64,000 bases of DNA from the IMG/VR virus record IMGVR_UViG_3300048571_000088, positions 178,589 to 242,588 of that record. The stretch is one strand, 5' to 3'. The notes beneath the pieces were generated by a model, which did no database searches, was not told where the DNA came from, and saw only the letters and a list, made by a program, of their open reading frames with translations. The position numbers and the translations under genes were made by a program. Of this stretch, positions 57,685 through 57,772 are shown piece after piece (the first letter of the stretch is position 1; every line of letters starts with the position of its first letter).

Positions 57685-57772
57685 TTGTCGTTAAGTTAAG
57701 AATCGAACTTCTCTCATCACTGAGAGGCCAAAGTAAAAACTTTGTTTAGCACCTTTGCTTTGCAACTTAACG
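57685..57772 (-). ncRNA. tRNA-like RNA with 9-bp acceptor stem, 3-bp T-stem and long variable arm
   Basis: CGUUAAGUU/AACUUAACG; AGCA-AAGG-UGCU; CAAAG-UUUUUA-CUUUG; CUCUCA-GUGA-UGAGAG; AAG-UUCGAUU-CUU; ends A-CAA; intergenic. Confidence 0.7.

Follow-up and report, generated by a model that had tools for sequence, protein, structure and literature searches.

What is the purpose of a gene for a transfer RNA (tRNA) that appears unable to decode? This question is raised by a 64,000-nucleotide (nt) stretch of the IMG/VR virus record IMGVR_UViG_3300048571_000088 (positions 178,589 to 242,588 of the record, hereafter the window), which carries on its minus strand a tRNA-like element of 88 nt, including a 4-nt A-CAA tail (window positions 57685..57772). 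The record, from a freshwater jumbo phage, is 242,588 bp long with 33% G+C and is rated 100% complete by CheckV; the window is its last 64 kb, and the element is present as a sole copy in this genome. As detailed below, the element is real, conserved, structurally supported and selectively maintained. The explanation that we tentatively favour, and which may be right, is that the RNA is processed and, instead of decoding, mimics a tRNA and is bound by tRNA-binding proteins.

The layout of the element was read from the minus strand (the window coordinate is 57773 minus the RNA position). The acceptor stem is formed by a 5' strand of 9 nt (RNA 1-9, 57764..57772) and a 3' strand (RNA 76-84, 57689..57697), with nine of nine pairs formed in each of the five sequences of the family introduced below. 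A 4-nt linker (RNA 10-13) leads to a D arm with a 4-bp stem and an AAGG tetraloop in which GG is invariant (RNA 14-25, 57748..57759), and a 3-nt linker (RNA 26-28) to an anticodon arm with a 5-bp stem and the 6-nt loop UUUUUA (RNA 29-44, 57729..57744). After a further 2 nt (RNA 45-46) come a long variable arm, consisting of a 6-bp stem and a tetraloop (RNA 47-62, 57711..57726), a T arm with a 3-bp stem AAG/CUU and the 7-nt loop UUCGAUU, invariant in all five sequences (RNA 63-75, 57698..57710), and finally a discriminator-like A followed by CAA (RNA 85-88, 57685..57688). The sequence of the acceptor/T branch permits only 9+3 pairs and not the 7/5 arrangement, and the D stem has only four Watson-Crick pairs, flanked by A-A mismatches. 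The minimum free energy fold is a four-way junction (z = -3.2) that only one of 200 shuffled sequences equals in stability. The elbow is that of a canonical tRNA, since a T loop of the UUCRANY type and the D-loop GG are both invariant in the five copies. An initial annotation of the element, made from the sequence alone, had listed the 9-bp acceptor stem, the 3-bp T stem with its UUCGAUU loop, the D arm with GG, the 6-bp variable arm, the UUUUUA loop and the A-CAA end; all are found in the minus strand, and its structural reading, with a putative 3-bp T stem in a 9/3 fold, a long variable arm, an abnormal anticodon loop and no encoded CCA, fits the sequence and is backed by the conservation and covariation analyses that follow.

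Relatives of the element were reached through homologues of the DUF7275 protein encoded upstream. Four contigs from other samples (L010, L012, L013 and L014), whose DUF7275 proteins are 48-58% identical, carry a homologous element at the syntenic site, directly before the YqeY gene in L010 and L013, and before the start of a Bfd-like gene, itself followed by YqeY, in L012 and L014. The position is constant, 3' of DUF7275 and directly 5' of the ribosome-binding site of the YqeY or Bfd-YqeY genes. A 21-mer pattern recovered two further loci in metagenome contigs, with elements identical to those of L012 and L013, so the family consists of five distinct sequences from one narrow clade. Their pairwise identity is 74-89%, compared with 49-69% (DNA) and 28-58% (protein) for the flanking genes, except for one closer pair in which the latter reach 79% and 77%, respectively. 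The boundaries of the conserved region coincide with the ends of the acceptor stem. No change is seen in an 18-nt block that takes in the foot of the variable arm, the T arm and three bases at the start of the acceptor 3' strand, nor in the D-loop GG or the UUUA of the anticodon loop.

The sequence changes among the five copies respect the predicted helices. In the alignment, 99.2% of the cells are paired, against 28-50% in controls with slid partners, and none of 500 shuffles reaches the observed covariation score, statistics that are inflated by the shared ancestry of five sequences from one clade. Six pairs have changed on both sides: three belong to the acceptor stem (pairs 1, 2 and 6, all compensatory), and the D, anticodon and variable stems contribute a single pair each. 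At the outer position of the D stem, two sequences have U-A in place of A-U and one has U-U; the third pair of the anticodon stem is A-U, G-C or G-U; and the third pair of the variable arm, in which two more pairs vary by wobble, is C-G, A-U, G-C or U-G. The pair that closes the anticodon loop, read directly from the sequences, switches as well: the window, L012 and L014 have G-C, and L013 and L010 have U-A. MAFFT misplaces the gap at this loop. The acceptor, D, anticodon and variable helices also emerge from an independent RNAalifold prediction. Four cells are G-U pairs, which would be A-C mismatches on the other strand, and the RNA is therefore read from the gene-sense (minus) strand. The putative T arm rests on its perfect T-loop motif and on the matching GG of the D loop.

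Standard tRNA finders and Rfam entirely miss genes of this kind. ARAGORN made no call in the window at default settings, and no Rfam family matched the element at the gathering score or at E<=10. Over the whole genome at E<=10, the tRNA model RF00005 marked 14 places, the element not among them, and the selenocysteine tRNA (tRNA-Sec) model RF01852 marked two, both elsewhere. The initial annotation had suggested ARAGORN and Infernal searches; lowering the ARAGORN threshold to 90% (-ps90) placed the element among 11 tRNA-type genes of the 242-kb genome, with a two-base anticodon 'tt', and at 80% it was labelled Lys-like. The covariance model R1 gave the element 108.4 bits as its single match in the genome. 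Several identities were rejected on these grounds: a canonical tRNA (no call by RF00005 or default ARAGORN, no 7/5 branch and no 7-nt loop with U33), a tRNA-Sec (not picked by RF01852), a transfer-messenger RNA (none found by ARAGORN -m, no Rfam match), and a YrlA-type Y RNA acting with Ro60 (no Rfam match, and no TROVE/Ro60 gene, PF05731, in the genome).

The tail had been regarded as an anomaly, CAA standing in place of CCA, and this view does not hold. About half of the phage's own tRNA genes end in N-CAA, and others end in N-CCA: Arg(tct) ends in G-CAA, whereas Phe(gaa), one class-II tRNA with a CAU anticodon and one other tRNA end in A-CAA. Among the copies of the element, those of the window and L013 end in A-CAA, that of L010 in A-CCA and that of L014 in U-CAA, while the tail of L012 reads C-AAC, or A-CAA if the stem has 8 bp; an N-CAA or N-CCA tail is thus present in at least four of the five. 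The base before position 1 is U in four of the five. A tail like that of the phage's own tRNA genes, together with an intact elbow, points to cleavage by RNase P, 3' trimming and CCA addition, so that the unusual end argues for tRNA-like maturation, which we infer as probable. No CCA-adding enzyme (PF01743) was found in the genome.

The anticodon loop is the part that departs most clearly from a decoding tRNA. It is UUUUUA (6 nt) in three copies and AAUUUAU (7 nt) in L013 and L010, and the two forms share only UUU-A. The 7-nt form has A at position 33, where U is near-universal in tRNAs (PMC7609411). A loop that varies in size over a stem maintained by compensating changes makes triplet decoding unlikely, and for the same reason makes decay unlikely too. 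The earlier suggestion of a tRNA mimic or decoy still names the likeliest class of explanation, since the loop changes size between relatives, with a decoy in the strict sense as one possible form.

The genes around the element all lie on the minus strand and are tightly packed. Upstream, and absent from the initial annotation, is the DUF7275 gene (57964..58896, minus strand; Pfam PF23940, E 1.3e-44), whose product has an N-terminal nucleotidyltransferase core of the Pol-beta type (NTP_transf_2). Residues G16, S17, D27 and D29 are invariant, leaving the GS...DxD signature of nucleotidyltransferases intact. A VIA structure search with the AlphaFold2 model (mean predicted local distance difference test score, pLDDT, 91.5) returned MenT1 first (Z 11.0, root-mean-square deviation 3.6 Å over 150 aligned residues), followed by TglT (Z 9.1), ANT(2'') (8.4) and MenT4 (7.4). 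The protein is thus predicted by modelling to have a Pol-beta nucleotidyltransferase fold, with MenT1 as the closest solved one. Between this gene and the element lies a small open reading frame (ORF) of 65 amino acids (aa) with a GTG start and no family match (57786..57983, minus strand), which overlaps the DUF7275 gene at its end; comparably small genes are called at this site in L012 (68 aa) and L014 (71 aa) and not in L010 or L013.

Downstream, the initial annotation had named a Bfd-like and a YqeY-like gene, and both assignments are borne out. The first encodes a 58-aa Bfd-like [2Fe-2S] domain protein (57500..57676, minus strand; PF04324, E 1e-5, 26.2 bits against a cut-off of 26) and overlaps by 8 nt the start of the second, which encodes a 144-aa YqeY-like, GatB-tail-type protein (57073..57507, minus strand; PF09424, 33.3 bits; PHROG 1460 'tRNA amidotransferase', E 2.9e-20; YqeY structure PDB 1NG6, E 1.6e-4). 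YqeY is a free-standing form of the GatB tail domain, which touches the elbow or D loop of the tRNA in the amidotransferase complex. A tRNA-directed module of the element and its neighbours is therefore plausible. Further genes of the neighbourhood, also on the minus strand, encode a dihydrofolate reductase, a dUTPase, an HslV-like peptidase, a metallophosphoesterase and a DUF7020 protein. The 5 kb around the element (window 55000-60000) had no blastn match in isolated phages.

Taken together, these data would fit the following scheme. The element would be co-transcribed with its neighbours in a minus-strand phage operon and excised by host enzymes, RNase P acting at the 5' end and 3' trimming and CCA addition at the N-CAA tail. 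The released RNA would adopt an L-shaped fold with a normal elbow, formed by the UUCGAUU T loop and the D-loop GG, and carry an anticodon loop unfit for the ribosome, whose two forms, of 6 nt and of 7 nt with A33, have only UUU-A in common. It would then act as a tRNA mimic, a protein ligand rather than a decoder. The likeliest partners would be the two flanking gene products, the GatB-tail-type YqeY protein and the MenT-like nucleotidyltransferase; alternatively, the RNA may be bound by a host enzyme directed at tRNA-Lys(UUU).

A number of observations weigh against this proposal, besides the inflation of the covariation statistics mentioned above. The T stem is invariant, so that covariation lends it no support, and RNAalifold pairs G10 with U77 instead. 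After the acceptor stem, the linker has GC where standard tRNAs have U8, and no copy has G at position 1. Foldseek returned only weak nucleotidyltransferase matches for the DUF7275 model. The nearest relative (L009/G001) has both DUF7275 and YqeY and no element, two overlapping ORFs lying between them, and a DUF7275 homologue occurs in 712 phage records, the protein being widespread without the element. As both DUF7275 and YqeY are widespread without it, neither protein needs the RNA, and synteny inside one clade may reflect mere descent. On the transcript side, all 24 public runs that contain the phage are freshwater DNA metagenomes; contigs from four DNA runs gave identical fragments with no variants seen, and added nothing.

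The narrow distribution is also apparent from the wider searches. Model R1 found no element in 80 viral loci with more distant DUF7275 genes, in five whole records of related jumbo phages or, with filters off, in eight loci whose YqeY genes are more remote. Searches for exact 23-mers and 18-mers gave no match in a collection of viral contigs that may omit the record itself, and searches of viral contigs for loci with single proteins returned nothing. The 21-mer pattern was likewise absent from genomes representing 185,579 prokaryotic species. As neither these genomes nor the viral contigs contain an exact match to the invariant block, the element is neither a copy of a host tRNA nor the remnant of an attachment site.

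The main alternative, which we consider somewhat unlikely, is that the element works in cis, as a tRNA-like signal in the operon mRNA. It might be a 'punctuation' site, at which cleavage by RNase P or RNase Z separates the nucleotidyltransferase message from that of YqeY or Bfd-YqeY, or a tRNA-mimic operator through which YqeY, by binding it, regulates its own translation, in the manner of threonyl-tRNA synthetase on the thrS leader; in either case the released RNA would have no function of its own. The geometry of the locus suits such a role. The element occupies the whole 109-nt gap between the 65-aa ORF and the Bfd-like gene, whose ribosome-binding site and ATG follow the acceptor stem by about 12 nt, and in all five loci it ends 12-28 nt before the next start codon, with the ribosome-binding site just behind it. 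A scan for promoters and terminators found no site at the element above chance expectation, a downstream product has a domain of tRNA-binding type, and the element-less relative has overlapping ORFs in its place. However, a bare processing site would need only the acceptor/T minihelix and the elbow, whereas here the anticodon and variable arms are also kept by compensation and UUUA is invariant; an N-CAA or N-CCA tail as in real tRNA genes suggests that the mature 3' end matters; and in three loci the next gene is the Bfd-like ORF and not YqeY. The selective maintenance of both arms and the tRNA-gene-like tail move the balance towards a trans-acting RNA, as in the non-decoding mimic that we favour.

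It is very unlikely, in our view, that the element is instead a working, unorthodox decoder, that is, an allo-type tRNA with anticodon UUU, possibly charged by lysyl-tRNA synthetase through UUU and A73, that reads AAA and AAG or, in another version, makes non-triplet steps by means of a 6-nt loop or a loop opened to 8 nt in a genome with CGG-dependent +1 frame changes. Allo-tRNAs of the 9/3 and 8/4 types do work in Escherichia coli translation (PMC5389517), and this possibility draws further on the invariant UUU-A37, the regular 5-bp stem and 7-nt loop of L013 and L010, the discriminator A of at least three of the five copies, the Lys-like label given by ARAGORN at the relaxed threshold, and the occurrence in the same genome of CGG-specific +1 frame changes and of other tRNA-like genes with 6- or 8-nt loops. 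Set against this, the size of the loop is not conserved and the 7-nt form has A33, the phage already possesses a standard tRNA-Lys(UUU), the loop is unable to pair with either CGG or CGGA, the discriminator may be A, U or C, and no score is obtained with the covariance models of tRNA and tRNA-Sec. Finally, a decaying tRNA gene or the leftover of a tRNA-type integration site, with no present function, is hardly credible: other truncated or irregular tRNA-like sequences in the genome, the failure of standard detectors and the narrow distribution are what such a relic would leave, but the element is far better conserved than its flanking genes, shows compensatory changes in four helices, and contains an invariant block with no exact match in the prokaryotic genomes searched, so that no host tRNA resembles it.

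Among known RNAs, the closest in architecture are the (9/3) allo-tRNAs, whose 12-bp acceptor/T branch split 9/3, long variable arm, Sec-like D tetraloop and canonical T loop are matched by the predicted fold of the element. Some of them play no part in translation and are found next to toxin-antitoxin genes (PMC5389517), and 8/4 forms are known from phages (PMC5389517; review PMC7609411). In the element, the acceptor part of the 12-bp branch has three covarying pairs, and the T stem is possible in every copy but invariant and not predicted by RNAalifold; the 6-bp variable arm shows covariation, and the D tetraloop sits on a stem of only four Watson-Crick pairs. In contrast, described allo-tRNAs come from Acidobacteria, Clostridia and Proteobacteria rather than from a jumbo-phage operon, and display readable anticodons in 7-nt loops, have longer stems in the anticodon and D arms and mostly carry G73 or U73, in keeping with Ser identity, whereas the element, compared with them by description only, has a 6-nt or A33 loop, a 5-bp anticodon stem, a 4-bp D stem and a variable discriminator. 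The 7-nt loop and lengthened stem of the anticodon arm of allo-tRNAs are thus both lacking, and, judged by its sequence, the element would be a new variant of the allo-tRNA architecture and not a member of the group, from which its anticodon loop and stem set it apart.

Phage tRNAs that escape tRNA-targeting host defences through changes in the anticodon loop (PMC10264068, PMC11555353) are likewise phage-borne and tRNA-shaped, but they keep the 7/5 fold and a 7-nt loop and decode, which the element probably cannot do. Its UUU-A recalls tRNA-Lys(UUU), a known target of anticodon nucleases. In the thrS leader and in YrlA with Ro60, a tRNA-like fold serves as a ligand for a protein and not as a decoder. 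The element is a complete cloverleaf and no partial mimic, in a genome with no TROVE/Ro60 gene and with no Rfam match of its own. Ro/TROVE (PMC7824862) and the tRNA-Other of Bacillus cereus (PMC5389517) provide comparison cases for non-decoding tRNA-like RNAs.

On the protein side, MenT toxins extend the 3' ends of tRNAs (PMC7450476, PMC11162799, PMC11541572), and MenT3 picks class-II tRNAs through their long variable loop (PMC11162799). The DUF7275 protein shares with the MenT/DUF1814 proteins the Pol-beta core and the GS...DxD signature, and MenT1 is its best structural match, but a Pfam search found no DUF1814 match in its sequence, it has an extra C-terminal helical domain with no clear match, and no antitoxin-like partner was recognised. 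Unlike the element, DUF7275 is widespread in T4-like and jumbo phages, where it occurs without the RNA.

A bolder version, which we regard as quite unlikely, is that the element, the MenT-like nucleotidyltransferase and YqeY form a dedicated ribonucleoprotein module that acts on the tRNA pool in this clade of freshwater jumbo phages. Such a module might sequester or divert a host nuclease directed at tRNA-Lys or class-II tRNAs, hold back or direct the enzyme with which the phage itself modifies tRNA tails, or aid the CGG-dependent +1 frame changes. If true, it would represent a new kind of phage RNA-based device for counter-defence or translation control, and a small one, with one RNA and two or three small proteins. 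tRNAs are a main battleground between bacteria and phages, fought over by anticodon nucleases, cleavage of tRNA tails, MenT-type tail extension and replacement tRNAs, and an RNA with the upper half of a tRNA intact and a tRNA-Lys-like UUU-A loop unfit for the ribosome would be a natural candidate for an RNA decoy or regulator. It would also extend to phages the rare 9/3 architecture, so far known from a few soil bacteria and used in genetic-code engineering.

The surroundings of more distant homologues were also inspected. In L015 (1-3915), the DUF7275 gene lies just downstream of genes for an RNA ligase (PF09414), an AAA_33 kinase-like protein, a metallophosphatase and cREC, and in L017 (1-3900) just downstream of Zeta-toxin/AAA_33, NADAR, MazG and CTP_transf_like genes. 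These surroundings look like RNA-repair neighbourhoods or neighbourhoods of conflict over nicotinamide adenine dinucleotide (NAD), and resemble the RNA-repair neighbourhoods described for jumbo phages (PMC7824862). A homologue in a Klebsiella phage has an annotated context of hypothetical proteins only. In L116, four standard tRNA genes (Thr, Ile, Gly and Leu; 169-826) are followed about 700 nt downstream by a distant phage YqeY match (1501-1809). In the present genome, an Rnl2-type RNA ligase domain (PF09414, E 5.4e-15) is encoded near the left end of the record (genome 5306-5803, minus strand), some 12 kb from the element were the two ends of the genome to be joined.

The initial annotation had also considered the element to be of interest in a genome that appears to manipulate decoding. 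CGG-dependent +1 frame changes do occur, both on the minus strand of the window (for example at 18778-21619, 23584-25331, 26461-29279, 42580-44029 and 48589-49643) and across the genome (+126402, +151594, +154307, -207020 and -221957 to -232613). Among genome-wide in-frame CGG codons with a long open frame upstream, 20 of 67 continue only in the +1 frame; by the same measure, the figures are 3/91 for CGC, 4/64 for CCC, 12/221 for CGA and 9/272 for GGG. Most of the strong sites read CGGA. When CGGN is read as one step, 12 ORFs of at least 250 aa contain such steps, most of which arise by extension or fusion of standard ORFs. Ordinary triplet reading of CGG is seen at several CGGT sites and along a series of sites at genome 101-112 kb, and a blanket CGGN rule therefore does not raise total ORF length. 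No tRNA whose anticodon matches CGG was among the ARAGORN calls at the default threshold or with mild relaxation. As the annotation itself had remarked, the loop of the element is not complementary to CGGN; nothing links the element with these frame changes, and the proposed connection was rejected (the relatives' loci are too short for an analysis of co-occurrence).

The same genome holds other unusual tRNA genes. Two of them, at genome 29813-29898 (86 nt) and 44461-44549 (89 nt), both on the minus strand, combine the long variable arms of class-II tRNAs with a CAU anticodon, an unusual combination. Further irregular tRNA-like genes are found on the minus strand at genome 45155-45232, 30608-30693, 26445-26563, 37735-37843 and 43773-43878. 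Among these irregular genes, one has an 8-nt anticodon loop ('ttaa') and one a 6-nt loop with no acceptor stem, while the other three measure 106-119 nt and carry inserts within or next to the anticodon or variable region.

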